Of a stretch of DNA of 64,000 bases, positions 24,001 through 61,697 are shown piece by piece. Positions within the stretch are counted from its first letter, which is position 1, and each line of letters starts with the position of its first letter. Source of the stretch: Selaginella moellendorffii. Lineage: Eukaryota > Plantae > Lycopodiophyta. Made by a program: the position numbers and the translations under genes. Location of the stretch: assembly GCF_000143415.4 (NCBI RefSeq), contig NW_003314262.1, forward strand, positions 2,778,603 through 2,842,602, in the 5' to 3' direction. Under the pieces are notes generated by a model. The model was not told the DNA's origin. It searched no databases and was given only the letters and a program-made list of their open reading frames with translations.

Positions 24001-24188
24001 ACAGCGCTACGTATACCTGCACACCCCCTCCCTCCGTCACCCAAGCCAAGTCAAAGCCAGATACGAGAATATTCTGAAAATTGGTTTAGGAACTTATATG
24101 AAAGAGTTTAGGGTTCTTGGGTTAAGCGGGAAAAGGGCATAGGCAGTTTCGTAGGTTCTCTATGGTCAAATTTAGGTTTCAGAGAGCT

Positions 24189-26490
24189 GAGGGTCGATCG
24201 ATGCGATTTCTGAGCTTGCGCCAAATGCCAAAGCGTATCCTCGTCTGTGCAGGCTGCTGTTCCTGGCATGCAATCAACATGCCCTGTACTGCTCCATGTG
24301 GAAGCAGATACAAAATGCCAGATTCCCACTATGCACACTCCCAGTTGCGGCATTGAGGCGCCTTGCCCATGTATTGGATAGGGTGAAGGAATTTCTCCAG
24401 CAATGCAGTCATAAAGAGCACTGGGAGTGGATCGCTACATCCAGGTATGACAGGAGATGGGAAGTTGTGGAACTTCTGTCAGAGCTTCAGGAATGTGTGG
24501 ACATAATCAACTCGGACGCAATTCCAAGGTTAGAGGGTATGTGGGCAGGCCGTGTTCTTGAGTGGTTGTCCGATATTGAGCAGGAGCAGGATCTGTATTA
24601 TGACCTCCACAGTTTGGCAAACAAAGATTGTGCCGAATTGGTGAAGAATGCAAATTCAGAGGAGCTTGTCGAGTACTTATCTCAAAGACAAAGCGGCTAC
24701 TGTCCAAGAATAAACATGGAAGATTGGCCCACTGGCCCTACTGAGGAGTGGTTTGGTTGGCAGGGTCAGGCTGCTATACTTGTGGAGCTCGATTATGATG
24801 AGGATCTTGAGGTGACAAATGGTCCTTTCCTAGGTCCAAGTTCCTCTATTGTGCAGATGTTTGGATGGTGTCACTGCCACAATCCCAGGAAGCATTATAT
24901 ACTTACCGAGAATCATGAGGTCACATATTTAGGGAGAGTGGCGACTGTCACACTCACCATACGGGAGGCACCCACCATGTCTCACCTACTTATAAACGTT
25001 GTCCAAAGTTGGTTGCAACACTTGCATAGACATGGTTTTCCGGAAGTTGTAATACTGTTGAGTTCATCGTTTACTGGTGGCAATGGGAAAGAGGGAATGT
25101 GACAAACTTGAAAAACTTACTCTGTAAATCATTAAAACTGTTTGTGAAGCTAACTAAAGTTAATTATGGTGAACTAAATGCAGAGGCCCTGAAAGAAATA
25201 GTAAACCAAAGTGACTATGACTTTCCACACATGGATGTGATCATCGATATCTTGCAACCCTTTTGAAGGCAGCACGCAAGTGTGTATAAACGTAACAGGC
25301 TATGAGTTTGAGCTCACGCTGACAGGACAGGTGCTGAGTGGAGACAGACAAACATTATTCCACACTCTGAGCTCCACTCCAAACGTATATATGTTAAAGG
25401 CCTTTACAGAGGCCTACCCTGCCGCAGAATTGTGCTTTACAGTTCTGATGTGCTCCCTACACAGTTTGAGAACCTGCCTAAGGTGGTAAAGAAGTCTACT
25501 CTCTAGCTTAGTAGTTCATACACATTTGACTTTTGGCTTTCAGGTTGTTGCAGAACTCAGCGCTCTGCGGCACCCCAACATCGTGCGGTACTATGCATCT
25601 GAGGCAGGCATTGAAGCAATAAACTATCCATGGATTGTGAATGGCATGCTGTTCATTTATGAGGAGGACGTCACTTCCAAGTCTGTCCTTCAACGAAAAT
25701 GAAATTCGAAAATACACTTATCAGATTTTATCTGGCTTGGAGTATCTTCATAGCAGAGGCGCAAGACACGGGTTCATGCTTTAAGATTGATCGTGAAAAC
25801 TTCATACTGATCTGTAGATTCTTTGTCAGGGCGCTCACAGCTGCAAACATACTCGTGGATACTTCGCATAAAGTTGTTAAGCTATTTCATTATGGCATCG
25901 CTTTGCAATCAGTACGTGTCTAGTCTGTAACATCTGAAACTGTTACGATTTTCCTTACCAGATTGAGGTCGTTCTTGAGATGCCGGCTGAGGTTTGTGGA
26001 TTGATAATCGTGGCCACATTGCTGAAACTTGTATCTCCAGTATTGTGATAGTCTTTCAGCGGATGTTTGGAGCCTGGGCTGTGTTGTACTTCAAATGATC
26101 AAGAATTTGGAGCCACAGGGTAAATACTCAAGCACGGTTTATATGCTCCCTTTGCATTTTTTAAAATTTTCTTAAAAACGTTTTAAGTGGTTGGTTTCAT
26201 CACAGCTCTCACACTTCTTTGGACGGGAAGTAGTCAACGTCCAATCTGGTGAGGAGGAGACCCCTGTAATGCCTGGGGACAACTTCCTAGTTGAATGCAA
26301 TCGCTTTTTGCATTGGTGCTTCGAAAGACGAACAAACAAACCCACAGTGAAGCAACTGCTTCATCAACCTTTGGTGCACATAGTAAGCTGGTCTTTACAT
26401 AAACAAACATAATAACATGTGAGATTATTTGCATGCTAGCAACACATTGAGAAACTTGTGGAGGACGTGCGTGCGGAGCTCAGGAAGCAC
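24189..26490 (+). pseudogene. 4HB-tandem pseudokinase paralog 1, disabled
   Basis: Homologous to 39202+ and 58033+; ATG deleted; frameshifts. Confidence 0.85.
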
Positions 26491-28252: not shown

Positions 28253-31200
28253 TGTCGAGATGTCAGTCTCGATCGGCTGACGTGGCATGTCCACGTGGTC
28301 ATGAGTCATGTCCCTTGAGTCATGTAAAAAGAGTCGGAACACAATGAACGAGCTCATGAGTGTTATGTCCATCCCTTTTTACATCACAACATGGTATCGG
28401 ATTTCGGGGACGATCCTGGTTGGTTGATTTGACGTTGCTGTCATGGCCGCTTCAACACCACCACCGCCGCCGCCGCCGCCGCCACCGGTTGCTGCTCAAG
28501 TTCTCGTGGCTTCCACAGAGGAGGTGGAGAAATTCAGTGGCACGAATTTCTTCACATGGGCGACAAGAATCAGGCTGATTCTCTCTGCGAAACGGGCGTG
28601 GAACATCGTTGATGGGACTGAGCCTCGTCCCGCTGAGCAGACGCTACAATCAGATTGGGATTTTCGCAATCAGCAAGCCATCACCGTCATTGGCTTGGGA
28701 TTGAGCGATGAATTCTTGCCGCTGATTGATCTCACCAAGACCGCTGCTGAAATCTGGACGTTGCTTCGCACGATCTTCGTGGCCCAAGCCACAAATTCTT
28801 CCATGCTGCTGAATCAACAATTCTTGGCGCTTCACATGGAAACGGGTGAAACCATTGCTGTGTACGTGGGACGGATTCGAGGGCTAATGGCTGAATTGAC
28901 TGGTGCTGGGTCTCCTGTCACGGACGATCGCGCCAGGGCGTTGCTGCTTGCAACCGTCACGCCTGCGTTTAGCACGCTCGCATCTGTTCTATCTCACAAC
29001 TTTGATCAAGTCGTGGGTGCCCTAATTGAAGAGGAACGCAAGATGAAGCGATGCCCTCAGCCAAATCTTCCTTGCTTTATGCTGGTGCTGCGGGAGGATC
29101 ATCCTCGTCCTCTCAAGCTCAGCCGAACGACACTGGTTTTCGTGGCATGTGTCACTATTGCCACAAACCTGGACACTTGGCGAGGGATTGCAAGAAGAAG
29201 AAAGTTGATCATGCTAAAGCTGCCAAGAACAATGACAAAGGAAACAAAGACAAGGGCTCTGGGACTCCTTGTAAGCTCTTGATGGCTCGCTCTGCAAGCA
29301 GCAGCCACCAGCCCGTGCTCGGACCAGAGCTGTGGCTGGATTCTGGAGCATCATTCCAAGAACAATGTTTCCTTTGTCTTTGTTCTTGGCAGCTTTAGCA
29401 CGATCAACTTTCTTTTTCTTGCAATCCCTCGCCAAGTGTCCAGGTTTGTGGCAATAGTGACACATGCCACGAAATGTCGTTCGGCTGAGCTTGAGAGGAC
29501 TAGGATGATCCTCCCGCAGCACCAGCATAAAGCAAGGAAGATTTGGCTGAGGGCATCGCTTCATCTTGCGTTCCTCTTCAATTAGGGCACCCACGACTTG
29601 ATCAAAGTTCATGGCCATGTGAGATAGAACAGATGCGAGCGTGCTAAACGCAGGCGTGACGGTCGCAAGCAGCAACGCCCTGGCGCGATCGTCCGTGACA
29701 GGAGACCCAGCACCCCCATGGCTTCCTTGTTTTTTGACTACCAAGAACCGTGTGAGAGTGACGCCGTGGGACTCGGTGACTCCTCTGCTCACAACGTACT
29801 AGGCAAAGGAACAATCAGGGTTCAGCTCTCTTCTGGAGAAATCCGGGAGATCTATCCTGTGTCTTATGTTCCGGGACTTACACACACGCTGCTGTCGATT
29901 GGAACTGCTGCTCAAGTAGGCTTCGATACTCTGTTCACAGCAATGCCGAGACTGGAGACTTGGAGTTCCAGTTGATACGCTCTACCGCCTGGATGCTCAC
30001 GTGATCCTTCCACCTGTGGCGCTGATGGCTCAGGTTCCACCGACACTTGCAACCTGGCACCAGCGCCTTGGTCACGTGAACGAGCAACAGCTAAAAATCC
30101 TGTGGCGCCTGGGAGCGCGCTGCCCTTTTGCGAAGCTTGTGTTGGTGGAAAACACCACGTTTTTCCTTTTCCACAGATTTCTCATTCTCGAGCAAGTTCT
30201 GTTCTTGAGTTGGTACACTCGGACATTTGTTCGATTATGGTTGAATCTTTGGGAGGCAAACGTTACGTAGTCACCTTCCTGGATGATTACACACGGCACC
30301 TGATCGTGTACCTGCTGGCTCATAAGTCAGAAGTGTTCTCCTGTCGAGAGGGTGAATCGCACCATCATAGAAGCTGCACACTGTATGCTGCTTCACGCGG
30401 GAATGCCGGCTGCTTTCTGGGGAGAGGCAGTTAACACGGCTGTTTATGTTCGAAACCGGTTGCCAACACGTGCCCTGCTTGGGAAGACCACTCCTTATGA
30501 GCTTTGGACTGGTCACGCACCTGGTTACGATCATCACAAGCAACGCCGAAAGCTGGAGTCAAAGGCTGAGCCATCCATTTTCCTGGGATATTTGGAGGGC
30601 ATGAAAGGATATCACCTTTATTCTCTCAAGCGCAAGACTTTGCTGGAAAGACGGGATGTGCTCTTTGATGAGAGCAAGCTGTACAAGGATCGCGCTGAAG
30701 TTCCTGCTCCTACTTTCGTGGAACTCCAGCTGGTGGACACAGTTCACGTGACTACAGCTGCCTCCATTGCTGCCTCTTGCTCCTGCTGGTGGTAACCTGG
30801 TGGTTCCTCCAGCACTGCCACCACGCCCTCCAGCTACGCCTCTGCAAGAATCTCCTCCAGTGAGAACACCTAGCTTCTCTGAAGAGCTGATGAACACTTA
30901 CTTCGAGGGCGACGAGGAATTTCAAGCTGCTCCTGAGTTCTTCCTCGGCTCATCTTCAGTGGGAGCTGGACGTGGATCATCACCTTCAGTGGGAGCTGGA
31001 AGCAGGTCGCCAACTTCAGTGGGAGCTCTCCCAGACTCTCCACTTGTTCCACCACCTGTGATCCACCCTCCAGCATGTCCTGAACCACGGCGCTCTGCTC
31101 GAGTTCCCGTACCATCGAGGCTGCAACTGGAAGCTGAGCAATCTCGTCCCTTCTTTAGTTTTGGAAAAATTAAAAAGAAAGGAACGCACCAGGCTAACTT

Positions 31201-32919
31201 CGTGGCTGCTAATCCAGAGCGAATCCCCATTCCAGCGAATGTTGACGAGGCATTAGCTGGACCTCATGCTTCCCAGTGGCGAGAAGCCATGAATGCTGAA
31301 ATGCATTCGCATGAGCGAAACAATACAATGACAAAGACAACCTTACCTGAAGGTGCTCACCTTGTGAGCTCGAAATGGATTTACACAGTCAAGTACAAAC
31401 CTGATGGAACTGTAGCAAAGTTCAAGGCCAGGTTTGTCGCACGGGGATTCAGCCAGATTCCAGGTTTGGAATACATGGAGACGTACTCACCAGTTGTGAA
31501 GTTGACCTCTGTGCGAGTGATCCTTGCACTGGCTGCCAAGTACGACCTGGAACTGCACCAGTTGGACGTTCGCACTGCTTTCCTGCACGGCAAGTTGAAC
31601 GAGGAGGTCTACGTCAAGCAACCACCTGGATTCGTCAAACCTGGTGAGGAATATCTTGTTTGCAAGCTGAATCGCGCCCTGTATGGGCTTAAACAATCCC
31701 CGAGGGTTTGGTTTGAACGCATTGATGCGTTCTTCAAGAGCCTGGGGTGTGTTCCTCTTGCAGTGGAAGGAAACGTGTACCTGTACAAGTGTGGTGACGA
31801 TTTTCTCCTGGTTGCTGTGTACGTTGACGACTGCATTCTCGGTGCAAAAACCCGCCACCTGCTGGATGAGATGAAAAAGAAGCTGAGTGAAGAATTTGAG
31901 ATGTCTGACCTGGGCGAGCTTCGCCATTTCCTTGGCATCCAAATTATACGCAATCGAGGAGCACACACTTTGAGTTTGACACAAGCTCACTATGCAAGGG
32001 AGATCTTGGAACACTTCAATATGCTGGACTGCTCTTCCATGGCCACACCTCTTGAGGTCAATCACAAACTCAGCCGTGACATGGCCCCTGAGAGTACACG
32101 GTGCCATATCGTCAAGCTGTGGGAAGTCTTGTTTATTTGATGCTGGGCACGCGACCAGATCTCGCCTATGCTGTTGGGAACTTGGGATGGTCTCCCAGTT
32201 CCTCGAGAACCCCGGACCTGGACATTGGCAAGCTGTGAAGCGGATTTTCCGCTACGTTCGAGGTACCTTGCATTTGCAGCTTCACTATGGCGCTGCTGTG
32301 TCACAGGAACTTCATGGGTACTCGGATGCGGACTGGGCGGGCGACCAGGACTCAAGGCGCTCTACCTCCGGGTATGCGTTCTTGCTCCATGGGGCTGCTG
32401 TGTCCTGGAGCAGTAAGCGCCAGCCGCTGGTGGCTCTGTCCTCGACAGAGGCAGAGTACATTGCCCTAACTGCTGCCAGCAAAGAAGCGATTTGGTTGAC
32501 CCAGTTCTGCCGTGACCTGCCCCAGATTCCTGCTTGCACCGGCCCTATGGTGCTGTTCTCGGACAACCAAAGTGCTCTTGCACTGGCCGCCAATCCTCGC
32601 TTCCATTCTCGGACGAAACACATCGAGATTCGTTTCCACTACGTGTGGGAACAAGTCCTGGAAAGTTGTTGCTGGAATATTGCCCCACCGAGGCAATGGT
32701 GGCTGATATACTCACGAAGGCTTTGGCTCGAGACTCCTTTGAACGCCATCGCGCTGCACTGGGAGTCTGCTCTCCATCTGTTTCGGCTGAGTGGGAGGGG
32801 TAGTAGATGTCAGTCTCGATCAGCTGTCATGAGTCATGTCCCTTGAGTCATGTAAAAAGAGTCGGAACACAATGAACGAGCTCATGAGTGTTATGTCCAT
32901 CCCTTTTTACATCACAACA
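28253..32919 (+). mobile_element. Ty1/copia retrotransposon, decayed, short LTRs (28253-28391; 32801-32919)
   Basis: PBS TGGTATCGGA 28392; gag (KFSGTNFFTW, CHYCHKPGH), protease WLDSGAS, integrase (WHQRLGH, LVHSDIC), RT (KARFVARGF, YGLKQSP, YVDD), RNase H (YSDADWAG, RTKHI); PPT GAGTGGGAGGGG; imperfect TSD GCCCG/GCTTG. Confidence 0.93.
29355..29716 (-). repeat. Inverted duplication of copia gag segment ~28903-29245
   Basis: Minus ORF 29214-29792 reproduces GAGSPVTDDRARALLL...CHYCHKPGH of the plus strand. Confidence 0.9.
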
Positions 32920-34945: not shown

Positions 34946-37364
34946 TTGAAGTTGAAGTTTTGGTTTTTCTTTAGTTGGTGTGTGTATGAATAACAGGCTG
35001 TGCTGACAATAGGGAGGTGAGAGAGCAAGAGTAACTTTATAATGCCTTTTAAAATATTAATGTTTGACTTTTTAATCTTGGCATTTTACACAATAACTAA
35101 ATTAATTATAGCTCAAAAAAAGATAGTTTTGGAGTATTTAGGCTTATTTAATAAAATTGTCATCTCTTCCTTTTCATTCTATTGCAAAAAGAGTTAGTTG
35201 AGAATATATACAAATGGGTTAGAAATGTTAGCAATTACCTTTTTTCAATTAGTTTAAAAGGAAAGAAATAAAGTGTTATATATATATAAATGGTAATGAA
35301 AATGGATTTATCTTTAATATAAAAACTTGATATGTCAATAGTATTTTTGGTATGTGATATAAAAGTTATACATTTGGACCAAGTATAAAGTTAAAGTCGA
35401 TTTGAGGCCATATTTACATGTTCTCTATTGGGTGAACAATCTAACACTTAAATTGAGATGAATACTTGTGAAAGTTGTGAGTGAGACACCTTTAAGTGGT
35501 TGAAAGTTGGTTAAATGATTAAAATAGAATGAAATGTTTTGTCACTTATACATTCTTCCAAATTTTTATTATTAATAATTGAAATAAAAAAAGTTAAATC
35601 TATGTTTTTAGGTTTAATAAAATTATAGAAGTCAGGGTAATAGAATATTCTTAATAATTTATAGATATTTATAATATTTTTGTGTATCTTTTAAAATGTA
35701 AAAAGAAATAAAAATATTATGTTTTAATTTCGTCTTTAATGTAAATGATTTCTTTTCATGATGAAATGAATTTATGTAGATTTTTATTTTCATTTGAAAT
35801 CAGTTTCAAATTTTAATATTTTTTTCAAATACATTTTTTAATCAAATCCATTTACAAAATTATATGCTAATCACAAGAATAATCCTCTTTTGTCATTTCA
35901 GATTCAACCACTTCACATTCATCCACCACCTCACACTATACAATGTAAAATTATGGTCTAAAGTCTGTGGTAGTAATTTTGCTAGTAACCCTACAAAGAA
36001 AAAATGAGTGAAAACAAGTAAAAGATATTTAAGCAATTAATACAAAGCATATATGTTATACATAATCATCACACCATTTACAACAATATAAACTCTATTC
36101 AATATGTCATCTTGCACTAGCAAATTTTTTTTTTCTACATTCTAAGAATTCAACACTACTTCTATAAATCTCTATAACAGTGAGATCTTCCTCTTCATAT
36201 ATGCAGACTCATTGTGTGGGAAGAAAAGAAGATAACATAGTCTCTAATTTTGATGTTGTATGCAAACAAGTGTTGTTGTTGAGCTATATATGAGAATTAT
36301 TTGCTCCTAGTTTACACATTTGTGGCCTTTTAATTTCTTTATAGGAGAGAGTATAAATCTCTCTCCTGTGAAGAAAATAAAAGGCCACAAAAATGTAAAT
36401 GTGGGAGGTATATACATAACAATATAAACATAGTATCCCCTCATATATAAAGTATATCATCTCACTATCCTTACCTAACATAGTGACTACTAAATTTTTA
36501 ATGCTTTAAAAAAAAAAGAGGTGAAAAACCTTGCACAAATATCAAAATTCAAACCATACCACCTTAAAATGTATTAGCATTTTTTGAGCTCAGAAAATTA
36601 ATAATTGAGATTTTTGGAGTAGTTTGAATAACACACACTTGGGTACATGACTGTAATGTAGTGATTTGCTAACTTATGACCATGGAAAGAATCTAGAATA
36701 GAAACCACACACATTAATACATGCATTGGAGAGGAATTGGCATATATTAATTATTTACTTACATACAAATATTGTGTTGTAATAATCCACACTCCCCAAA
36801 ACAAATTCACCATAATGATCATACAACTCAAGCCAAAAAGCAAAAGCCCTAGAAAGAAAAGCTTATGTAGTCACTTTCAAGCACAATAAATGATTGAAAT
36901 GTGAAACATTTGTAAGAGTGTGAGAAATCAATGGGGGTAATGCTTTATTGCAACTACCATATGATCCAATTGTTTGCTGCAAAACCAACATACTCAACAC
37001 CTGAAACATGGTGAAACTAGCAAAAAAAAGCCTTTGTGCTATTATCTCACAAGAAATGAAAGGCAACTTACACAATTGAATATGTGTAAAGGAAAGGAGA
37101 GAGAAGTCATAATCAGAAAATCACAAATTGAATGAGAAAAAGGCAAAAATGAGGAAAAAAAACCTTACTAAATTTGCAATGATATCACAGAATTGATATC
37201 AAGGTTGCATTGCAGTCTAATGTGTCATGCCAATGAATACACAGCATATCCAATGACAAAAATATTATAAATACAATCATATTTAAATTGCAATTATAGC
37301 AATTTTAAAAAAATCTGCAAGTTTGCCACCATACTTAAAAATGCCCATATATGCTTTGTAGGTT

Positions 37365-39065
37365 TCATATAGCACTTCCGCCGACAAGACTGCAGCACAG
37401 AATGTTGTGCAGAATGTTACGTAATGACTTCAGAACCTCATCAACAACCGGTCTTTCAGATGGCTCATCAGAAGAACATCGACATATCAGAGCCTCCAGC
37501 TCTGCTGTTGGCATCCCGATGGCAGGCTGCGACAAGACCAACTGGGAGAATGTCTTTCCAAGGCTGTAAAGGTCCACCAATCTTGAGTACATGCTCTTAC
37601 CATTTCTTCTACTTTCTTCACTCCACAGCTCGGGGGCCATGAAAAACCTCGTCCCTACTGGAGCTGTATGTGATTGTTCAGTATTGAAGTTGATGCATGC
37701 AGTACCGAAATCGGTGAGTTTCAGGACAAGTTGCTCTTCGTCCTCATCAGTGAAATCGATTAGTACGTTTTCTGGCTTGAGGTCTCTGTACACAATGTTT
37801 TTCCCATGCAGGAACTCGAGGCCCTTGGTAATCTGGAGTAGCATCTCGACCAGTTGCAAGAGCGTGAGCTCTTTGTTCTTGCTGGCATACTCTTTTAGAT
37901 CCATCCTCATTACCTCCATGACCAAGTGGGTACAGCTTTTGTCAACCTTGTAGTAGCCGATGGTTTGAACAATGTGAGGAGCAGCCTGTATACTTGATAC
38001 TGCGGGCAGTTCTCGTGATGGAAGATCTTGAGACTCCTTGAACTCCTTCACTGCAACTAGCCTTTGATGCCACGTTCCTTTACGAACAACACCTTGGCTT
38101 CCTCTACCGAGCATTTCCCCAAAATGAACGCTCACGTTCTCCGGGTTCAACTCGGGCAACTCTGAAGAATTTACTCTCTGTAGTATATATTCAGCATAGT
38201 GACTTCTAAATTTCCCATCTTGTGCCAGGTTTTCCAGTGCGGCTTTGTCGAGTTGGGCTGCTACTTGGATTTGTGGCAGGTAAGCCTGAATAGGACTTTT
38301 GCCAATGAGCCCGCACATGAAATGAAGTTCCTCCACGATCTCCTTAATTTCCAATTCCCTGTCGTATTTCACAGCCGCAAGCCACTCCCAATGCTCCTCA
38401 TGCACGGAACACTCTCGAATCAGCCCGTTTGCTTTCCTGATGAATTGTCTTAGCCTCCTCAAGAAGACCTTACTGCTTGCAAACCCTCTCACCATTTCAA
38501 CGCTGTCGTTGCAAACCCAACTCAACAGCTTGCACTGTTCCTTATGGACTCCGACAGCACTTGCAGTCCGGTCTATCTTTGCCATGATCTGATCGAGTTC
38601 AGCTTCATGCTCGACGCTGTCAATTTGTGGTGCAGGGATTCGGACATGAGATGAAGGATGTTCATGATGGTCAACCGGGCCGCTCCACCATAGCTTGAGT
38701 GTCAACGAACCTCTCTCCATGATCGCGATGCAGCCGAAGCCGAACTTCAGCGGGTACTCTCGCTGCTCGGAAGGCTCAGCTGAACGATGCGGAACCTCAC
38801 TACCCTCTATCTTGATTTTCCCCAGAGAACGCCCATTCGTGTGATTCAGAACAGAGACACCAACATGGCTTCGCTGCAATGCATCCCCCTCAACGTTGAG
38901 AACCAGGGTCTCGTTCCATTCGGGATCCAGAGTCCCATGTTGTACTCGGGTATTGACCTGCTGCCTCTCGAAACTCACTATACAGTAAGGACTTGCTGAT
39001 CCGCGTCCATCTCTCGGCATCAAGCCGCGAGCGCTGCAAACCTTGATATGCACCCTCCTCGCCAT
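37365..39065 (-). CDS. C2 domain + MLKL/MCA-like four-helix bundle + Ser/Thr(TKL-like) kinase, intronless, ~566 aa
   Basis: Open ORF from MARRVHIK; C2 motifs (SARGL..SPYC..TLDPEWNET); helical QCKLL...LRQFIRKANGLIREC; kinase GRGSQG, VAVK, YRDLKPEN, DFG, APE. Confidence 0.88.
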   Translation of the reverse strand: MARRVHIKVCSARGLMPRDGRGSASPYCIVSFERQQVNTRVQHGTLDPEWNETLVLNVEGDALQRSHVGVSVLNHTNGRSLGKIKIEGSEVPHRSAEPSEQREYPLKFGFGCIAIMERGSLTLKLWWSGPVDHHEHPSSHVRIPAPQIDSVEHEAELDQIMAKIDRTASAVGVHKEQCKLLSWVCNDSVEMVRGFASSKVFLRRLRQFIRKANGLIRECSVHEEHWEWLAAVKYDRELEIKEIVEELHFMCGLIGKSPIQAYLPQIQVAAQLDKAALENLAQDGKFRSHYAEYILQRVNSSELPELNPENVSVHFGEMLGRGSQGVVRKGTWHQRLVAVKEFKESQDLPSRELPAVSSIQAAPHIVQTIGYYKVDKSCTHLVMEVMRMDLKEYASKNKELTLLQLVEMLLQITKGLEFLHGKNIVYRDLKPENVLIDFTDEDEEQLVLKLTDFGTACINFNTEQSHTAPVGTRFFMAPELWSEESRRNGKSMYSRLVDLYSLGKTFSQLVLSQPAIGMPTAELEALICRCSSDEPSERPVVDEVLKSLRNILHNILCCSLVGGSAI

Positions 39066-39201
39066 TGGGTGGAGCTCAAGAAGATGAACGCCGCTACGTA
39101 TACCTGCACACCCCCTCCCCCCTTCACCCAACCCAGCCCCAAAGCCAAACTCTTACCCAGCCCCAAAGCCAAACTCTTGCCTATTTAGGTTTCAGAGAGC
39201 T

Positions 39202-41460
39202 ATGGAGGACATACTGAGGTCGATCGATGCGATTTCTGAGCTTGCGCCAAATGCCAAAGCGTATCCTCGCCTGTGCAGGCTACTGTTTCTGGTATGCAAT
39301 CGACATGCCCGGTACTGCCCCATGTGGATCAAATGCGGGCTCATCTCTTACCTCTCACCACCGATCAAATTTGCGGCCTTGGAGCGCCTTGCCCATGTAT
39401 TGGATAGGGTGAAGGAATTTCTCAGGCAATGCAGTCATAAAGAGCACTGGGAGTGGATCGCTGCATCCAGGTATGACAGGAGATGGGAAGTTGTGGAACT
39501 TCTGTCAGAGCTTCAGGAATGTGTGGACATAATCAACTTGGACGCAATTCGAAGGTCAAGGCGAAAAGAGGGTATGTGGGCGGGCCGTGTTCTTGAGCGG
39601 CTGTCCGAGATTGAGCAGGAGCAGGATCTGTATTATGACCTCCACAGTTTGGCAAACGAAGATTGTGCCGAATTGGTGAAGAATGCAAGTTCAGAGGAGC
39701 TTGTCGAGTACTTATCTCAAAGACAAAGCGGCTACTGTCCAAGGATAAACATGGAAGATTGGCCTGCCGCTCCTACTAAGGAGTGGTTTGGTTGGCTGGG
39801 TCAGGAGGCTAAACTTGTGGAGCTCGATTATGATGAGGATCTCGAGGTGACGAAGGGTCCTTTCCTAGGTCCAAGTTCCTCTATTGTGCAGATTTTTGGA
39901 TGGTGCCACTGCCACGATACCGGGAAGCATTACATACTTACCGAGAATCGCGACCGTCACATATTTACGGAGAGTGGTGACCGTCACAGTCACCATAGTG
40001 AGGCACTCACACTGTCTTGCCTTCTGGAAGTCACTTATCAAGTTGCACAAACTGTTCTACACTTGCATAGACATGGTTTTCGGGAAGTTGAGATTGACCT
40101 GAGACTGCATAATTCTGTTGAGTTCATGGTTTACTGGTGGCGACGGGGAAGGGGGAATGCGACAAGTTTGAAGAGCTTACTCTGTGAATCATTAAAACTG
40201 TTTGTGAAGTTGGCTGATGGTGAACTATATTCAGAGGTCCTGGAAGAAATCATGAACCAAAGTGACAATGACTTTCCAGACATGGATGTGATAGTCGATA
40301 TCTTGCAAGCCTTTCGAACAGAGCGCACAGGTGTGTATAAATGTAACAGGCTATGAATTTGAGCTCACGCTGACAAAACAGGTGCTGAGTGGAGAAAAAA
40401 CAGTTTTCAACGTTGCCGCAGAATTGAGCTTTACAGTTCTGATGTGCTCCCTGCACAGTTTGAGAACTTGCCTAAGGTGGTAAAGAAGTCTACTCTCTAG
40501 CTTAGTAGTTCATACACATCTGACTTTTGGCTTTCAGGTTGTTGAAGAACTCAGTGCTCTGTGGCACCCCCACATCTTGCGGTACTATGGATCTGAGCCA
40601 GGCGTTGAAGCAATAAACTATCCATGGATTGTAAATTGCATGCTGTTCATTTATGCAGAGGATGTACATGGAATAACACTTGCAAGTCGGTCATTGAACG
40701 AAGATGCAGTTCGAGCATACACTTGTCAGATTTTATCTGGCTTGGTGTTTCTTCATAGCAGAGGCACAAAACACGGGTTCATGTTTTAAGATTGATCATG
40801 AAAACTTCATACTGATCTGTAGATTCTTTGTCAGGGCGCTCACAGCTGCAAACATACTTGTGGATACTTCGCGTGAAGTTGTTAAGCTATCGCATTATGG
40901 CTTCGCTTTGCAATCGGTACGTGTCTAGTCTGTAAAATCTGAAACTATTACGATTTTCCTTACCAGATTGAGGTCGTTCCTGAGATGCCCGCTGAGGTTT
41001 GTGGATTGATAATCGTGGCCACATTGCTGAAACTTGTATCTCCAGTATTGTGATAGTCTTTCAGCGGATGTTTGGAGCCTGGGCTGTGTTGTACTTGAAA
41101 TGATCAAGAATTTGGAGCCACAGAGTAAATATTCAAGCATATCCAACACCAGCAAAGATTTGGTTCGTCTTTGCATTTCTTTTTTTTTTTTCTTTTTCCT
41201 TTTTACATTTTAAGTGGTTGGTTTCATCACAGCTCCCACAGGAAGTAGGCAATGTCCAATCTGGTGAGGAGGAGACCCCTGAAATGCCTGGGAACAGCTT
41301 CCTAGTCGAATGCAATCACTTTTTGCATCAGTGCTTCGAAAAAGGAACAAACAGACCCACAGCAGTGCAACTGCTTGATCATCCTTTCGTGCGTGGTTAT
41401 GGCAGGCTGGTAAGCTGGTCTTTACATAAACAAACATAATAATATGTGAGGTATTATTTG
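39202..41460 (+). CDS. Four-helix-bundle + degenerate kinase + second MAP3K-like pseudokinase (multi-exon); integrity uncertain
   Basis: 384-aa first exon MEDILRSIDA...LCRLL...LERLAHVLDRVKEFLRQC; later exons HPHILRYYG, YTCQILSGLVFLH, LTAANILVD, ADVWSLGCVVLEM, RPTAVQLLDHPFV. Confidence 0.7.
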
Positions 41461-41599
41461 CATGCCAGCCAACCAACATCAGCATCAACAAGGATTTGGA
41501 CCTTGAAGTGGCAGGGTTGAAAGAAGAGCTAAGGGCATTGAAGATAGACTCTGAAGATTTCTATTTGAGCCGGTTTCCTCGGCATTCAAATAGATTTTC

Positions 41600-42740
41600 A
41601 AGTGGCGCATTTCATGGTTTGTCTATTCATTCACCTGAGATGGAGTCTGAGATGGATCCAAGATGGAGTCTATGATGGAGTCTAAGAAGGACTTGTGATG
41701 GAGTTGAAGATGAACATAAATTAGAGTCCAAAGTCGAGTTTAAGATGGATTTGAGATGGTGTCTGAAGTTAAAATTGAGTTTGAGCACCTTTGGGTGTCG
41801 GTCATGGGATTAAACATGTGGAGCATTTAGACTAAGTGCAAAGGTTAAATGGCATAGATATTATTCATGGGATTAGCAATTTTTTCTTAAATCCGGAGTA
41901 GGATTTATGGAGGTGGTGAGTAAGACTCTTCCAAGTGGTTGAAAGTGTGGTTAAATGACTAAAGTAGAATAAAAAAATTTAATTGTTTATGTATAGTAGG
42001 AAAAAGATTTCAATAAAGCCAATTTGGCTAGGAAATGTTAATGTAACCAAAGAAAGTTATACCCACGTGATACAACCACTAAGGAATTCAAGGTTAGAGT
42101 GAACATATACAAATAAATGGGGTATATTTGGTGAAATGTTCAAAAGTTAGCTCTCACTCCTCTGAAAGATCAAATGGTCAATGCTCTCAATCTAAGTGTG
42201 GGTGACACTACCTACTTGGATATATGGCATGGCTTATTGGACCCTTACTTTACCTATATGGTTAGAGCACCCAAAGGTGGAAAGTAGAGAGAATACTCAT
42301 GAGGTTTGTGTAGGGCTATAGTGTTCCAAAATATTGTCTTAGAGTCCCAATGTGTGAAAGCGAAGAAAAGTAATCCTTTTGTGTAATGACTGAAAATACG
42401 ATCACATGGTGAGAAAGTCCTGAGAACCTGCCTAAAGTGGTAAAAAAGTTTACTCTCTAGCTTAGTAGTTCATACCCTTAACTCCCTCGGGAGATCAAAT
42501 AATCAATGCTTTCAATCTAAGTGTGAGTGGCACTACTTACTTGGATATATGGCATAGCTTATTGAAACCTTACTATATGGTTAGAGCACCCAAAGGTGCA
42601 AAGTGGGGAGAGTACTCACAAGGCTTGAGGCTATAATGTTCCAAAATGTTGTCTTAAAGTCCTAGTGTGTGGAAAAGAAAAAGAATAGTCCTCTTGTGTA
42701 GTGATTGAAAATACGATCACATAGCGAGAAAGTCCTAGGG
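41600..42740. mobile_element. Decayed retroelement-derived insertion
   Basis: gagatggagtc units (41635-41770) are the degenerate reverse complement of the 12-mer at 350-880; two diverged ~260-bp repeats at ~42160-42420 and ~42480-42740. Confidence 0.5.
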
Positions 42741-42744
42741 GTTA

Positions 42745-43364
42745 GAGAACCTGCTTAAGGTGGTAAAGAAGTCTACTCTTTAACTTAGTAGTTCATACAC
42801 ATTTGACTTTTGGCTTTCAGGTTGTTAAAGAACTCAACACTCTGTGGCACCCCCACATCTTGCAGTACTATGGATCTGAGCCAGGCGTTGAAGCAATAAA
42901 CTATCCATGGATTGTAAATTGCATGCTGTTCATTTATGCAGAGGACGTACATGGAATAACACTTGCAAGTCAGTCATTGAATGAAGATGCAGTTCGAGCA
43001 TACACTTGTCAGATTTTATCTGGCTTGGTGTTTCTTCATAGCAGAGGCACAAAACACGGGTTCATGTTTTAAGATTGATCATGAAAACTTCATACTGATC
43101 TGTAGATTCTTTGTCAGGGCGCTCACAGCTGCAAACATACTTGTGGATACTTCACGTGAAGTTGTTAAGCTATCTCATTATGGCTTCGCTTTGCAATCAG
43201 TACGTGTCTAGTCTGTAAAATCTGAAACTGTTACAATTTTCCTTACCAGATTGAGGTCGTTGCTGAGATGCCGGCTGAGGTTTGTGGATTGATAATCGTG
43301 GCCACATTGCTGAAACTTGTATCTCAAGTATTGTGATAGTCTTTCAGCGGATATTTGGAGCCTA
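42745..43364 (+). pseudogene. Duplicated 3' exons of the 4HB-tandem pseudokinase gene
   Basis: Near-identical to 40460-41080. Confidence 0.85.
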
Positions 43365-44294
43365 GGCACTTTAGGATCTAATTTTCTGAAGATTGATGAT
43401 TGTTGTGGATACAAGTCTTGCCTGTTGCATAATGTAATACCAAGCTAACTTTAGTTTTCATTGCGTAAGTTATCATTCATTCATTCATATACTGTTACAT
43501 GGTTCTGCGGTGCTCAAGGAGCACAAGTGACTTTAAACACTACATTTATATGTAAGAGATAGTGATTCCTTTATCACTGTTCCTGGGTGTTGTCAAAAGT
43601 CACATGGATTATAAAATATTTACATTGGTATGTATGGTTTCTGAATTGGGCATTTTTATGGCTTCGGCGGGAAATCTCTTGTGCGTCTTGGCCATGGCGG
43701 CCACCGCGGCTCTGGCTGGGAGTTATGCGGTAAGCGCGTTGCATTCCCTCGTCCTTTCTAGCTGCTTGGGCATAACAATCCTTGCTCTCTTCCTCCAGAC
43801 AAGTACAAGAACTATCCCGTCAACATCAAGGACGTGGAGGTCCTGCCGGATCCCGTTGTGAGCGGCCAGGATGCGGCATTCGTTGTTCCAGCGAGCACCA
43901 GTAGGTTTTCTCTGCGAAGTTTCTTAGCTGTATTTTAATCCAGCGACTGTGAAGATGCTGAGTAACCGTAAGGTTAGAGACATGTTGTTTCTTTCTTCTT
44001 ATTGTTCTTGTGATGAGTATTTTATTGTTCTCAAAGTGATCATGAGACGCCGGTTTTCAGTTTTACAGGTGAAACTTCGTGCATTTTGCTCTTCATGTGT
44101 TCTAACTTGTGGAAGCAGTGGGAGGCACTTGCTTTGCTACTGATTGGTATCAGTGTGAATCAGCTGCATACGACGCCAACTGGGACAACGGTCGTCGTTC
44201 CGCTTCAATCCATTGCATATGTATACACCTTGATTTTTGTAAGTCAGCTCTTCTTTGCATGTTGTGCTGTTTGCTCAATCTACGATCTCAGTTA

Positions 44295-46990
44295 CAGGTC
44301 ACTGTGCCATCCATGGCGTCCGTGTTCAATGAAACCGCGCCCTTAAGAGTCAGTTCGAGACAAGTCTTCATCTTCAGGTGCGTGTGCTACACGTAGTTTT
44401 TGTAAATGTGCGATGTTCAACTTTCTAGCGATTCTGGTTACTGCTGATTTTAGTGGTATGGCCTTTACTCTCTATCTGTTTTTTTTTCTTTTTCTTAATC
44501 CATATGCGCTTTGTCAGCTGGGAATGGGCTTAATCTTTTCAAGGGCCACTCTCGGGCAAAAATGTTTCTAATCTTCAACAACGCAGCGAAAGGAATACTC
44601 TCTTGCATCTTTTTAAAATATGCTGGTAAGTCTTGAACTTTTGATGTGGCGCTTCTATAGGTGCGTTTTTCCAGATGCAATCTTGAAAAAGTACTCGTCT
44701 ACTGTTTCATGGCTAACTAGTATATTTCATAGTAGGCATATGTTTTGGTAGTGACAATTGTTGATAGCATTCAAAGTGTAATCAACAAGTTCTTGCATTC
44801 TAGAAACTTTGACATTCCTTCAAAAAAATAAACCTTTGCCTTTGCAACAATCTTTACGGCTTTGGCTTCTGCCGCCTTATTCCGGCACAAACTGACAATC
44901 AACTTTGTCTTAGGAGTATCAATTGTTATAATTTCTATGCACCAGGTATTCTCGTAGCTCTATTGCAAATACTCTGCTAACATAATAATGTAACAGTTCT
45001 TCTCGGCACTAAGCAAAACGAAGGACGAAAAGCATGACAATCAAATGGACACGTTCGTTGACAAGCATAACACTTGGTCATTGCCCCATATCTTGAGAGT
45101 TTACCACCAACCTTTTCCAAGCACTTGGGCTTTAGCAATTGCCACATCTGTAAATTTCTGCCTGTGAAGAAAGTATGCACTTCACCCATGCATGATGCAA
45201 TGTCTCCAAGCAAGAATCTCCATTGGGAGTAAGCCTGTCTCTAGAACCATGGTCAAATATGGAGCCTTGTATACCCTGAATTCTGCTGAGATGAAATGCT
45301 TATTGATTATTTTGCCTAACTTTTTACAAAGCCACTATCATTACCTTTATATGTAATAGATGTGTTTGACACCTCACCTATGTACGTTAGCTTTACAGCA
45401 ATTCGATTGGAAGCCTTTGTCACTGATGTGATGGGCTCCTTTACTTCAGTTTTCACAGGAGGTGTTGATTGACTAGGTACTTATATTTCTCCGTGTGCTC
45501 AATCCAGCTTAGCTTCATCGTGCTCAATCCAGCTTAGCTTCATCATGATTCAAAGTATTATCTCATAAATTTGCAGCTTAATATCTATAATACTTATTCT
45601 ATAACACATCACCTTTCAATCCTTCGCTTCATTTTTCAGTTCTTTAGTCCATGCTTCTTCTGCAGCTGCATACCGGTTATACCCTGGAGGCATTTCTTCA
45701 ACGGATCTGTAGAACTCGAAGCCTAGGCCTGCTTCGTATAAAAGTTCATCCAGTCGCTGAAAATATTCCCAGATAAGGGCCGCAAGAGGACGGGGTGGCC
45801 GAGGCACAATGAAGATTCCCAAGTCTGGATGTTTTTTGCAGATCCGTTTGAGGTTTTCGTATTCAATTCGTTGGACGCAGAAACGAGGATGGTATTGCGG
45901 GAAGTCTGCTACCTGAACGATATAACCCACCTGAAAACGTACACAAATAAACATATAAGGAAACAGAGAATGGGCAGAGAGGACTTACACTGGACCAATG
46001 AAGAGACTCCGTCTTCAGGTTTGTATCAGTTTCTAGTCCTCATTTCTCAGGGGATCTCTTGAACAGTGATACGTGTCGTGTCCCTTCGCTAGGCAGAGGT
46101 AGCATTTCTTTTGTTCAAGAGCAAAAGGATCCACTCCATGCTAGAAAAAGAAACAAAAAGTCAAATCTGGAAAATTCAGAATAAGTGAGCTTTCTTACCC
46201 CCTTGCAGTGTCTTTCCCAATGGCCTCTCTGCTTACAGCTTCTGCATTGGTCGACGAGTAATCCCTCCTTCTCACCCGGACGATGAGTTCCTATGATCTC
46301 GTACCTGTTACAAACAAAAGCAAGTAAACATCAAACTCAATCTTGCTTACCTTGCTCGGATGCGTTCGGTAGGGTTCTCGATTGCAAAAATGTCCACCTC
46401 CTTGGGCTCTTCCTTTGTGAACACATTGTGCTGCCCGTTTTTGCTGCCGCCGTAGGCATTCTTGTGCTGCCCTTTGCTACTGCTGCCGCCGTAAGCCTTG
46501 CTGCAGTGACCGTTGCTGCTGCCGCCGTAAGTCTTCTTGTGCTGCCCGTTGCTGCTGCTGCTGTAAGCCTTCATCCGGTAGCTATACCCCGTTCTTGGTG
46601 TTGAAAAGATACGAGCTTTAAATCATCCTGTTTATCGAGGATCCCTTACCTGGAGGACCGAAGCAAAGAGGACCTTGAGGAGAGCTTTATGTAGCTCCGA
46701 TGCGCGATCACAGCCTGGGTGGCACAAATAATTAGGTTTCCATGAGCTTCCACTCCATGGCGATTGATTACCTACACGAGGTAACCTTTATATTTGACCT
46801 CCATTTGTCCATTCTAAATTTCACCCTTCTTTCCTTTAGGCAAGGATGACGCTTTTATCGATGCTGGTGCTGGTGAACAGGTATGGACATCAATATTATT
46901 TGCTATGTATACTTACATCCGGTGCTAACAGGCAAACCTTAAAGTCGGTATGATGGATGACAGACAACCTTTGCTTCCTACTTAAGCTCG
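44295..46990 (+). pseudogene. Second nucleotide-sugar transporter fragment, split by a 1.7-kb insertion (45076-46772)
   Basis: Homologous to 27095-27990; cactt|acacgagg is contiguous in unit 1. Confidence 0.7.
45616..46650 (-). CDS. Unknown multi-exon gene with 33-bp repeat (SSxGQHKxxYGG) inside the insertion
   Basis: ORFs 45616-45954 and 46347-46574 with GT-AG boundaries between them; no recognised domain. Confidence 0.45.
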
Positions 46991-47177: not shown

Positions 47178-48277
47178 ATGGCTGTGATTTCCTCAAGTTA
47201 CAACCGTTTCGTTACCCTGGATTGCCGCTGATAGCATCAACAGCTTGGTAAGTTAAATCCTCTTCTATTCACTGATTGCTGTTTTCTTTCTTTCCTTTTT
47301 TTTTATTTTTTCAGACCGCGGACGAGTTTCGCAACCTTCAAACTGTGCTGAAGGAAGCTGCATTTAACAAGACTGTCATCGTGACTCCTTTGAATAAGGC
47401 TTGGGCATCAGAACTGCTATCCTACTTCCTGGCTAGCTTCCAAGACGGTGACGATACGACTCGCCTTCTTCCGACACTGGTGATCTTCACGTTGGATCCA
47501 TCTGCGAACAAGAAATGCCTGGAAGCTCATCCGCACTGCATCCTCCTCGAGAGCAATGGTGTGGACCTTTCAGCAGAGAAGCCTTACATGACCCGGGACT
47601 ACTTGAGAATGACAAGGAAGAAAATATCGTTCCTGAGCATTCTTCTACAGATGGGATACAACTTCATCTTCTCGGTAAAACTTTGAACCACTTTCTCCTT
47701 GCCTTCCTGTACTAACTTCTTCTCCAGGAATCGTCTCCAGGATGCAGACGTCTTGTGGCTGCGAAATCCCTTCTCGAATTTCTCTCCGGAAGCAGACGTG
47801 GAGCTAGCTTGTGACTTTTTCAATGGCAACGAGACGGACATTCGCAACCAGGACAACACGGGGTTGATGCACGTGAGATCCAATAACCGGACGATCGAGC
47901 TCTTCAAGTACTTGGACAGGCACGCCAAGTTCTACTACCACATCCATGACCAGGAAGTCTTCGACAGGATCAAGCTCCACGCCGAGTTCCGGGCCATAGG
48001 AGCCAAAGATCCCGTTCATGCCAACGGAGGTTTTCACTGGGTTTTGCAAGCCAGCCAGCGACATGGAAAGAGTTTGCACCATTCACGCCAACTGCTGCCA
48101 GGGCCTCCGGTCCAAGCTTGCGGATTTGCAGCTCGTCCAAGAGGACTGAAACCATTTCATGCGGACCAGGAACAGAGCAAATCTCCCCAAGAGGTTTCAA
48201 GCTCCGAGGGCATGCCTCAAGGGATGCTTCCTTTATGTCGAAACCGTGCAACAGGTCTTGCTACAACAGAAGTTTGA
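47178..48277 (+). pseudogene. Nucleotide-diphospho-sugar transferase paralog 2
   Basis: Same motifs as 33147-34100; 5' deletion and a frameshift near 48010. Confidence 0.78.
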
Positions 48278-48599
48278 ATGTTTCCTCGATGCCAACTTAA
48301 ACTTGTTCTTCAATGGGACTAGGAAAACTTGTTTTCATCAGATTTTCAATGAGTTCATGTAAGTGCATAATGCTTCCTATTTTGTGAATTGCCAGTTTTC
48401 ACCCTCATTCATACAGAGATTTGCAGCTCAGCCGGGGAGTTGCAAAGTTAGCTCTGAAGCCAGCTTGCTTGTTTCTCTGTCAGGCCGACCGAGTTTTTGA
48501 TACAAAAGGCAGCGACTGCTGGCAACGACTGCTCATATTGTATATATGAAGCTATATATACATGGGCTGTGGCAACTGCCTAATGCCACATCATCCTAA

Positions 48600-51410: not shown

Positions 51411-52596
51411 TCATATAGAACTTTTGCCAATAAGACTGAAGCGCAGAATGTCACGTAATGACTTCAGAACGTCACCAACAACCGGTCTTTGGGATGGCTT
51501 GCCACAACATTGACATATTAGAGCCTCCAGCTCTGCTGTTGGCTTCTGGATGGTAGGCTGCGACGAGACCAACTGGGAGAATGTCATTCCAAGGCTGTAA
51601 AGGTCTACCGATCTTGAGTACACGCTCTCACCATTTCTTCTACTTTCTTCACTCCGTAGCTCGGGGGCCATGAAAATACTCGTCCCTACTGGAGCTGTAT
51701 GTGAGAGTTCAGTATTGAAGTTGATGCATGCAGTACCGAAATCAGCGAGTTTCAGGACAAACTACTCTTCGTCCTCGTCAGTGAAATCGATTAGAACATT
51801 TTTTGGCTTGAGGTCTCTGTGCACAATGTTTGTCCCATGCAAGAACTCGAGGCCCTTGGTAATCTGGAGCAGCATCTCGACCAATTGCAAATGCGTGAGC
51901 CCTTTGTTCTTGCTTGCATACTCTTTTAGATCCATCCTCATTACCTCCATGACCAAGTGGGTACAGCTTTCGTCAACCTTCTTGTAGTAGCCAATGGTTT
52001 GAACAATGTGAGGAGCAGCCTGTATACTTGATAGTGCACGCAGTTCTGGTGATAGATGATGAAACTCCTTAACTGCAACTAACTGTTGATGCCACGTGCC
52101 TTTACGAACAACACCAAAGCTTCCTCTACCGAGCATTTCCCCAAAATGAACACTCACATTCTCTGAATTCAACTCGGGCAACTCTGAAGAATTTACTCTC
52201 TCTGTAGTATGTATTCAGCATAGTGACTTCGAAGTCCCCCATCTCGGGCCTGTTTTTCTAGTACGGCTTTGTCGAGCTGGGCTACTGCATAGACTTGTGG
52301 CAAGAAAGCCTGAATGGGACTGGCACCAATGAGCCCGCACATGAAATGAAGTTCCTCAACGATCTCCTCAATTTCCAATTCCCTGTCGTATTTCACAGCC
52401 ACAAGCCACTCCCAATGCTCCTCAAGCACGGAACACTCTCGAATCAGCCCGTTCGCTTTCCTGATGAATTGTCTTAGCCTCCTCAAGAAGAGCTTACTGC
52501 CTGCATACCCTCTCGCCATTTGAACGCTCGCCTTGCAAACCAAACTCAACAGCTTGCACTGTTTGTTATGGACTCCAACAGCACTTGCAGCACTTG
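51411..52596 (-). pseudogene. C2-4HB-kinase paralog 3, 5'-deleted
   Basis: Kinase and 4HB remain (HRDLKPKN) with a stop and a frameshift; C2 domain and start missing. Confidence 0.87.
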
Positions 52597-54215: not shown

Positions 54216-54221
54216 TGGTCT

Positions 54222-54800
54222 TTCATTAAGGTTTTCCTGTTCTGTCCGCTAGCGCGGTGCGCTTTGATCCCGATTTGTCTCATGGTATCGGAGCTGGGAT
54301 AGTGCTATGGAAGGAAAGCCATCCATCCGCGAGTTTGATGGAGAAGGGTTTGAGGGATTCAAGATCCATCTTGAATCCTATCTCTTGTTTCATGGTTTGT
54401 TGGGGATTGTAGATGGGACAGAGTCATCACCGGCTCCAGGCTCTAGCGCTGCTGAGGTGCGTGATTGGAACCTTCGGGATTCCAAGGCTAGAGGGAGTAT
54501 TGCGATGTGCTTGTCCTCAAATGTTCTCTTTGCTGCCCCATCAATTCCAAAGTCCACTGCCGCAGAGCTTTGGAAGTGGCTGAGTGACACTTATGGCACC
54601 AAGAGTGAAATGGATGTCTTCAACATCCATTCACAAATGGATTCCTTGAGGCTAGAGGAAAATGGCAGTATCTAGACTCACACTGCTAAGCTCCAGGGCT
54701 TCTTCACACAACTTGCGGCTGCTGGGGCAAAGCACTGTCTCACGGATGAGCAGCAGAGGCTGCGGCTTTACAGGTCCTTGCCCGCGAGCTGTTTTCATGC
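54222..54800 (+). mobile_element. Truncated copia element: LTR end, PBS, gag
   Basis: ...CA then TGGTATCGGAGC (54283-54294); gag MEGKPSIREFDGEGF...GLLGIVDGTE...W...DSKARG (54307-54675). Confidence 0.8.
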
Positions 54801-61594: not shown

Positions 61595-61697
61595 GCTTTT
61601 TAAGTTTCGCAAAAACGATAAAAAGGGTTCTGTGCTTTCCTTTTGAGTTGCCTATTTATGAATCGAAAAGGCTTTGGCCTCTTTGTGAAACCTAGCT

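Follow-up and report, generated by a model that had tools for sequence, protein, structure and literature searches.

A 64,000-nucleotide stretch of the genome of the lycophyte Selaginella moellendorffii (NCBI RefSeq assembly GCF_000143415.4, contig NW_003314262.1, positions 2,778,603 to 2,842,602 of the forward strand; hereafter the window) contains a divergent gene pair, with gene A on the minus strand and gene B on the plus strand and their ATGs at 39065 and 39202, respectively. A and B are old paralogues, each laid out on the plan of MLKL, in which a four-helix bundle and a brace are followed by a kinase-type domain. It is very likely that both proteins have the MLKL-like fold and that the pair is expressed. 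[quoted passage not shown] An initial annotation, made from the sequence alone, had described divergent ATGs 136 bp apart, in agreement with the positions given here. The same annotation ended the locus at 41460, which is too early, as gene B would reach a stop codon at 41675 with a probable intron of 52 nt removed. The elements of the pair are as follows.

37365-39065, minus strand: gene A, a single-exon coding sequence of 566 residues (protein P0001) with a C2 domain, an MLKL-like four-helix bundle and brace and an active-looking kinase; from the open reading frame, Pfam and RNA contigs
38784-39056, minus strand: C2 domain of A, residues 4-94; Pfam C2 (E 2.4e-15) and PDB sequence matches
38151-38615, minus strand: helical domain of A, residues ~151-305, predicted four-helix bundle and brace; AlphaFold2 model and structure searches
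37401-38126, minus strand: protein kinase domain of A, residues 314-555; Pfam Pkinase (E 3.6e-40), PDB kinase matches and motifs read directly
39066-39201 (136 bp): intergenic region with a C-rich core, presumed bidirectional promoter; sequence, conservation and RNA contig ends
39202-41675, plus strand: gene B, 8 exons, with a helical domain, a faint, possible kinase relic and an STE/MAP3K-like pseudokinase
39202-39741, plus strand: first part of B exon 1, N-terminal MLKL-like four-helix bundle and brace, residues 1-180; BLASTP to A, AlphaFold2 model, Foldseek and VIA
39742-40330, plus strand: second part of B exon 1, possible kinase relic, residues ~181-376; faint matches in the same register
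40382-41409, plus strand: B exons 2-7 (40382-40476, 40538-40776, 40835-40916, 40967-40996, 41046-41162 and 41215-41409), STE/MAP3K-like pseudokinase; spliced RNA contigs, Pfam Pkinase on exon fragments and the paralogue P0005
41469-41675, plus strand: B exon 8, which encodes a C-terminal tail that is not conserved and includes the stop codon; intron 41410-41468 in the contigs of runs X1 and X5, frame checked

Domain structure of the two proteins

The proteins encoded by A and B align by BLASTP with an E-value of 5e-11 through their helical domains. In alignments of 7-10 A-type and B-type copies the columns L..RL, CS, EHWEW, YDR and E..E...EL do not vary, and the related helical domain and shared motif of the initial annotation are therefore confirmed. 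Outside the family the sequence leads almost nowhere. Searching the helical domains of A and B against Pfam at E <= 10 gave no match, and neither bundle had a significant profile match to MLKL_NTD (PF22215), MCAfunc (PF19584), DUF1221 or RPW8; the sole trace in Pfam was RPW8 at an E-value of 0.046, for the paralogue P0002 only. A profile of the helical domain searched against the sequences of the PDB did not find MLKL. The match to CDK2AP1 in this search (E 0.007) is short and helical and was taken as chance. When 1.84 billion cluster representatives were searched with a profile hidden Markov model (HMM), the only relatives of the domain to appear were Selaginella paralogues, and a repeat protein that appeared at an E-value of 5e-4 in word and HMM searches is unrelated.

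The predicted structures point to MLKL. The AlphaFold2 model of the A bundle, built on an alignment of 7 sequences, has a mean predicted local distance difference test score (pLDDT) of 85 and a predicted TM-score of 0.80, with four long helices and two brace-like helices. The latter (model residues 109-133 and 139-150) come after the bundle, with the kinase beginning about 10 residues further on. In a Foldseek search of the PDB with this model the top six matches were AtMLKL3 and five entries of the human MLKL N-terminal domain (probability 0.95-0.99, TM-score about 0.6, E about 0.4). When 48,161 chains were searched exhaustively with VIA, the human MLKL N-terminal domain 6ux8 ranked first (Z 11.9, root mean square deviation 2.5 over 125 residues), with mouse MLKL 4btf at Z 9.6 and AtMLKL3 6ka4 at Z 9.2 over 153 residues. 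The shape search of the ESM Atlas gave MLKL at a TM-score of 0.77, MCAfunc at 0.65 and fungal MLKL_N at 0.64. The model of the B bundle is weaker (pLDDT 65), and with it the top five Foldseek matches were all MLKL N-terminal domains. VIA placed 6ux8 at Z 13.5 over 147/152 residues, 4btf at 11.1 and 6ka4 at 9.8, with the next row at 8.5 and the coiled-coil domains of NRG1 and Rx further down at 7.8.

Two points weigh against the assignment of the fold: VIA's own note says that chance can bring helical bundles to a Z of about 13, and the helical domain matches no Pfam four-helix-bundle family. We nevertheless accept an MLKL-like fold because the same family came first for two models and three methods, because the match spans bundle and brace, the alignments to the full-length MLKL 4btf and to AtMLKL3 6ka4 extending through the latter, and because a kinase-type domain comes next. 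The models therefore support an MLKL-like four-helix bundle and brace in both helical domains. Thus, of the MLKL-like bundle proposed initially, the fold is upheld by the models and by the MLKL N-terminal domains coming first in Foldseek, VIA and the Atlas, while the sequence gives no profile match to any such family.

In A the bundle is flanked by a C2 domain and a kinase. The C2 domain, which the initial annotation had not mentioned while correctly reporting the helical domain and the kinase, matches those of ferlin, PKC, synaptotagmin and the plant CAR proteins among PDB sequences. Reading the alignment directly, the key calcium-binding aspartate of its SDPY motif is replaced by S in A. The Pfam Pkinase match of the kinase covers profile positions 2-243 of 263. 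The kinase looks active, judging from its translation, because the full catalytic set is kept (GRGSQG, VAVK, YRDLKPEN, DFG and APE); the intact kinase first proposed for A is thus borne out by the Pfam match (E 3.6e-40) and by readable GxGxxG, VAVK, YRD, DFG and APE motifs. In a word search with this kinase domain nothing outside the family was nearer than about 30% identity and so we do not place it in a named plant subfamily. One RNA contig of X1 omits 56 nt within the bundle-coding region of A (38436-38491, minus strand). The skipped segment has GT..AG ends and the contig has a depth of 8, against about 17-19 in the flanks. Because 56 is not divisible by three, the protein made from this minor form would end after the C2 domain; the form could reflect either regulated unproductive splicing or an assembly artefact.

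The gene model of B was derived largely from spliced RNA contigs. These contain six introns, all with GT..AG ends (40331-40381, 40477-40537, 40777-40834, 40917-40966, 40997-41045 and 41410-41468), and the contigs of X1 and X5 that are spliced at 41410-41468 extend on to 41779. With these six introns alone the frame stops at 41213, giving 580 residues. Removal of a seventh intron of 52 nt, at 41163-41214, restores the frame through the conserved C-lobe to give 697 residues and the stop at 41675. The ends of this intron are GT..AG, a T-rich tract is present, and the stretch around it was skipped as repetitive in the read analysis; we infer from its sequence that it is real. The NCBI model of B (LOC112349717, P0004, 543 residues) misses the 49-nt intron 40997-41045, which is backed by spliced contigs from two runs, and thus terminates early.

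The C-terminal kinase-like domain of B has KHGALTAAN in place of HRDLKxxN and HYG in place of DFG, and is without the glycine loop and the lysine of the VAIK motif. Nineteen codons around the vestigial glycine loop that the paralogues retain are missing from B itself. Searches with this domain used either exon fragments or the stored paralogue P0005 as query. The best matches of P0005 residues 395-645 to PDB sequences were the pseudokinase domain of GCN2, MST1/2, ASK1 and MAP3K2, and by shape the nearest ESM Atlas clusters were MAP3Ks, from which we conclude that the domain derives from an STE-group kinase. On its motifs, then, it is a kinase fold without catalytic residues, a clear pseudokinase.

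Two degenerate kinases had initially been described in B. The C-terminal one stands, with its HGA and HYG motifs, while the first (residues ~181-376) gives only faint matches, with E-values of 0.04-0.15. This middle region occupies the place where MLKL carries its pseudokinase. It matched the A kinase by BLASTP at an E-value of 0.043 and PDGFR-alpha at 0.07 in the search of PDB sequences, and the faint matches all align the same stretch from beta4 through alphaE to the catalytic loop. Against a kinase alignment, hhalign returned a probability of only 0.4% with an E-value of 0.15, and for this reason we do not claim a kinase domain here, though the region is possibly, on its sequence, a kinase relic. 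At the other end of the protein, the final codons of the tail (..PEMESEMDPRWSL) resemble a low-complexity repeat, arrays of which are found at 99-1100 and at 41630-41675 of the window; the frames of these arrays read SRSRSR, SDSISD or MESEMESE. As the last codons look like the same repeat, the non-conserved C-terminus of B may derive from such a repeat element.

Promoter, gene copies and selection

The intergenic region of 136 bp is presumed, from its sequence, to be a bidirectional promoter. Its core is kept in all the paired copies examined and also upstream of the solo B copies. RNA contigs span A from 37360 to 39110 with zero differences, and those of B start at 39164, leaving a small gap between the two, although such contigs cannot fix the true transcription starts. 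Spliced forms of B are present in the contigs of three public runs (X1, X2 and X5), which must hold RNA-derived sequence as a result. In a further run, X20, on record as stranded RNA sequencing, the first mates over A and those over B map to opposite strands, the pattern that divergent transcription should give, with only 16 reads in total. Transcripts of A and B were both found in X1, X2, X5 and X20, scored as presence only. The head-to-head pairing that was suggested at the outset, and a shared promoter, are supported by the distance of 136 bp, the conserved core and the occurrence of both transcripts in the same runs.

To define the copies of the two genes we used tblastn, alignments and self-BLAST, covering the window and another scaffold, GL377581.1. 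Besides the focal pair there are copies of the whole pair at two places in the window and two on GL377581.1.

22351-26440: decayed whole pair, with an A-type gene at 22351-23999 (minus strand) and a B-type gene at 24191-26440 (plus strand); frameshifts and stops, from tblastn and self-BLAST
42741-43367, plus strand: partial duplicate of B exons, 627 bp, 96% identical to 40458-41084 (region of exons 3-6)
51414-54223: decayed pair that has lost the promoter and the 5' ends of both genes; A-type at 51414-52590 (minus strand), B-type at 52595-54223 (plus strand)
58033-60401, plus strand: solo B-type copy; exon 1 an intact open reading frame of 385 residues, later exons uncertain, no A-type partner upstream
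GL377581.1, locus L001: intact A-type gene (P0002) head to head with a dead B-type gene
GL377581.1, locus L001: second A-type copy (P0003 region) downstream, broken
GL377581.1, locus L002: intact solo B-type gene (P0005), with no A-type gene within 10 kb upstream
GL377581.1, locus L002: further pair, with the A-type and the B-type gene both broken

By self-BLAST, the block 19839-27552 matches 35067-44709 with 81-90% identity. Together with the copies at 51.1-54.2 kb and 58.0-60.4 kb, this substantiates the proposal that the pair has been duplicated as a unit. The 627-bp piece of B, about 2.3 kb downstream of its source, is far closer to it in sequence than any other copy, which indicates a very recent local duplication. 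Four of the six A-type copies and at least four of the seven B-type copies are broken. The decay and birth-and-death evolution described initially are thus seen in the frameshifts and stops of most copies, and of all pairs that were examined the focal one alone is intact in both genes. The bundles of A and B are only about 30% identical to one another while identity within each type is 75-87%, so that the split between A and B must be much older than the recent duplications; judging from these sequences, the pair would appear to have stayed together since that ancient split. We considered GL377581.1 as an independent case of pairing and rejected it. This scaffold is co-linear with the window and the flanks are 95% identical, so it represents either a haplotype or a recent segmental copy. 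At L001 9575-10001 an insertion of about 330 bp has lengthened the intergenic region of the pair, which contains the promoter core twice, and the inserted sequence also occurs at 57.9-58.0 kb of the window, upstream of the solo B copy.

The ratio of nonsynonymous to synonymous substitution rates (dN/dS) between A and P0002 is 0.98 for the whole protein, with values of 0.71 for the kinase, 0.96 for the bundle and 1.3 for the C2 domain, the figures for single domains resting on small counts. For exon 1 of B it is 0.82 relative to P0005 and 0.52 relative to the copy at 58 kb. When the observed substitutions were placed at random, no stop codon arose in only 1.1% of simulations for A (126 substitutions) and 1.3% for B exon 1 (106 substitutions), and broken copies at a similar divergence have many frameshifts. 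We therefore consider that the intact copies have been kept open while changing fast. This pattern would fit diversifying change on a maintained protein. Fast change with open frames is common in immune receptors but is no proof of an immune role.

Possible function and comparison with known systems

It is a real, if tentative, possibility that the products of A and B work together as a two-part switch for cell death or defence, as known systems of similar make-up suggest. The sensor/executor immune module put forward in the initial annotation is likewise a proposal drawn from architecture and analogy. Both proteins would be made from one bidirectional promoter of roughly 136 bp. In the version we prefer, which resembles RIPK3-MLKL, the active kinase A would be taken to membranes by its C2 domain and would phosphorylate, or co-assemble with, the pseudokinase B, whose free N-terminal bundle would then act on the membrane. 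To our knowledge, all known executors carry the bundle at a free N-terminus, and it is for this reason that we slightly prefer this order of events. A nearly equal alternative, resembling the cereal tandem kinases, is that the dead kinases of B would serve as bait for pathogen effectors, with A as the executor. In either case the family would turn over by duplication and loss, as clusters of immune receptors do. No NB-ARC or LRR domain was found in Pfam scans of A, of B exon 1 and of the open reading frame fragments of the later exons, nor is one present on the NCBI record of the B model; any such mechanism would therefore run through the kinases and the four-helix bundles. A more far-reaching proposal is that the pair forms an NLR-free, necroptosis-like immune system of two genes, in which A and B would form a hetero-oligomer and interference of effectors with the dead kinases, or phosphorylation of the latter, would free a membrane-attacking bundle. 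This we regard as unlikely.

Several observations weigh against joint action. On GL377581.1 the intact A-type gene P0002 stands beside a dead B-type gene, and the intact B-type gene P0005 is about 120 kb away with no A-type gene within 10 kb, so that each type can persist unpaired. All of the pairs derive from one ancestral pair and the repeated arrangement is therefore inherited, and not independent evidence of coupling. The bundle of A is internal, behind the C2 domain, unlike that of the known executors, and a dN/dS near 1 also fits weak constraint. A complex prediction for the bundle and brace domains of A and B scored 0.00; having been run without supplied alignments or controls, it speaks neither for nor against binding.

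The two proteins might instead be independent MLKL-like proteins, each acting alone as Pm13 or the AtMLKLs can, whose head-to-head layout is a leftover of a founding inverted duplication that was spread by segmental duplications. A and B are indeed paralogous, the copies were made by block duplication taking in flanking DNA, and the other scaffold has both an intact A and an intact B without an intact partner. However, the locus that is seen to be expressed is the only one at which both genes are intact, the shared 136-bp promoter is conserved, and the pairing has outlasted the deep divergence of A and B. In addition, the combination of an active kinase with a pseudokinase that shares its oligomerising domain is the classic make-up of a regulator-effector pair, and we consider independent action somewhat unlikely. 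A role in membrane signalling outside immunity, for example in calcium or mechanical stress, with the C2 domain and an MCAfunc-like bundle acting without cell death, appears more doubtful than any of the readings above. It would account for the C2 domain of A and for the ESM Atlas result, in which MCAfunc, the N-terminal domain of the plant MCA calcium channels, is the closest cluster by sequence features and among the closest by shape. Genes for housekeeping or physiological signalling, on the other hand, usually show conservation between species and evolve under purifying selection, whereas relatives of A and B were not found outside Selaginella, dN/dS is about 1 and most copies are dead; the loss of the calcium-binding aspartate from the SDPY motif of A also argues against such a role.

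Finally, the family may be lineage-specific and dying, with the focal pair a copy that has not yet been disabled and its transcription residual. The dN/dS near 1, the number of broken copies (4/6 A-type, at least 4/7 B-type), the non-conserved tail of B ending in a low-complexity repeat and the minor frameshifting splice form of A would all be consistent with this. Such a family would not be expected to show open frames in both A and both B copies despite 106-126 substitutions, an outcome reached in 1.1-1.3% of simulations, nor a kinase in A with all of its catalytic motifs, nor six RNA-supported splice sites that are retained and used, nor an invariant block of residues common to the A-type and B-type bundles after their deep divergence. 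Of the explanations considered it seems the least probable, and very unlikely.

A close parallel to joint action is RIPK3-MLKL, where an active kinase is likewise combined with a pseudokinase bearing an N-terminal four-helix bundle and brace, and both predicted bundles find their best structural matches in the N-terminal domains of human and mouse MLKL. The Selaginella pair differs in that the bundle has no sequence-level homology, the active kinase A itself bears a bundle and a C2 domain and lacks a RHIM-type partner motif, a second dead kinase, STE-like, is present in B, and the two genes are paralogous and share one promoter. Plant MLKLs (AtMLKL1-3, DUF1221 clade) have been described as conserved across seed plants (bioRxiv 10.1101/681015) and are detected by DUF1221/MCAfunc profiles. 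They share with A and B the plan of a HeLo/four-helix bundle, brace and kinase-like domain, 6ka4 aligning over 153-179 residues at Z 9.2-9.8. In contrast to them, the Selaginella family matches no DUF1221/MCAfunc profile, was found in Selaginella only and is without the serine-rich tail, and the kinase of A is intact.

Fusions of a four-helix bundle to a kinase execute immune cell death in plants, those of cereals having arisen repeatedly, and wheat has a head-to-head NLR/MLKL pair, R3NLR/R3AK (PMC10951266, PMC11297308, bioRxiv 10.64898/2026.08.07.743466). Pm13 and R3AK resemble A, as read from its motifs, in joining the bundle to a catalytically competent kinase; a lineage-specific fusion origin and a head-to-head pair with one MLKL-type member are further points in common. 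Here, however, the partner is a second MLKL-like protein with dead kinases and not an NLR, A has an N-terminal C2 domain, the host is a lycophyte and not a member of the Poales, and no resistance phenotype is known. The kinase-derived domains of B lack catalytic residues, like the pseudokinase or decoy parts of the tandem kinase proteins (such as Yr15/WTK1, Sr62 and RWT4), which work with a genetically linked executor. B differs from these in having its own N-terminal four-helix bundle and a first kinase-like region that is barely recognisable, and the linked gene is a bundle-kinase fusion, not an NLR. Pm4 also combines a kinase and C2 domains in one immune-type protein, but those C2 domains are C-terminal and accompanied by a transmembrane segment, and a four-helix bundle is lacking, whereas A has a single N-terminal C2 domain and no transmembrane segment was noticed, no predictor having been run. 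With head-to-head paired NLRs, comprising sensor and helper, the locus shares the divergent orientation, the short shared promoter and the clustered duplication and loss.

The recognition of plant fusions of four-helix bundles to kinases, and of tandem kinases, as immune receptors or executors is recent, and almost all of those recognised are from cereals and usually tied to NLRs. This locus differs in pairing two MLKL-like proteins, of which one is active and the other dead, in a lycophyte for which about 2 NLRs have been reported, with a bundle that has diverged beyond the reach of sequence methods. A literature search for MLKL or tandem kinases in Selaginella found nothing relevant. If A and B do act together, then kinase-controlled four-helix-bundle modules for cell death arose repeatedly and can run without NLRs, and the pair would offer a compact two-gene system in which to study how such modules are switched. 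Were the NLR-free, necroptosis-like proposal true, plants would have arrived at the RIPK3-MLKL logic independently, and the system might be a forerunner of the kinase-fusion receptor pairs of cereals. Surveys of plant MLKLs based on profiles (DUF1221, MCAfunc, Cbl-N annotations) will miss families such as this one.

Sequences neighbouring the copies

Between copies of the pair in the window, open reading frames at 28443-32846 show, as judged by eye, Gag-Pol features of a retrotransposon, namely a zinc knuckle of the CCHC type, a stretch resembling integrase and a reverse transcriptase containing YVDD; from these features the region looks like a Copia-type element. Open reading frames at 47211-48497 match a gene at L002 14583-15138 called as a nucleotide-diphospho-sugar transferase (PF03407), and in the window and L002 alike this sequence has copies of the pair on either side. 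At the end of the window, 60654-64000 is 94.8% identical to L001 3112-6482, which flanks the other MLKL-like cluster, in inverted order, and this segment includes a zf-C2HC_2-type gene.

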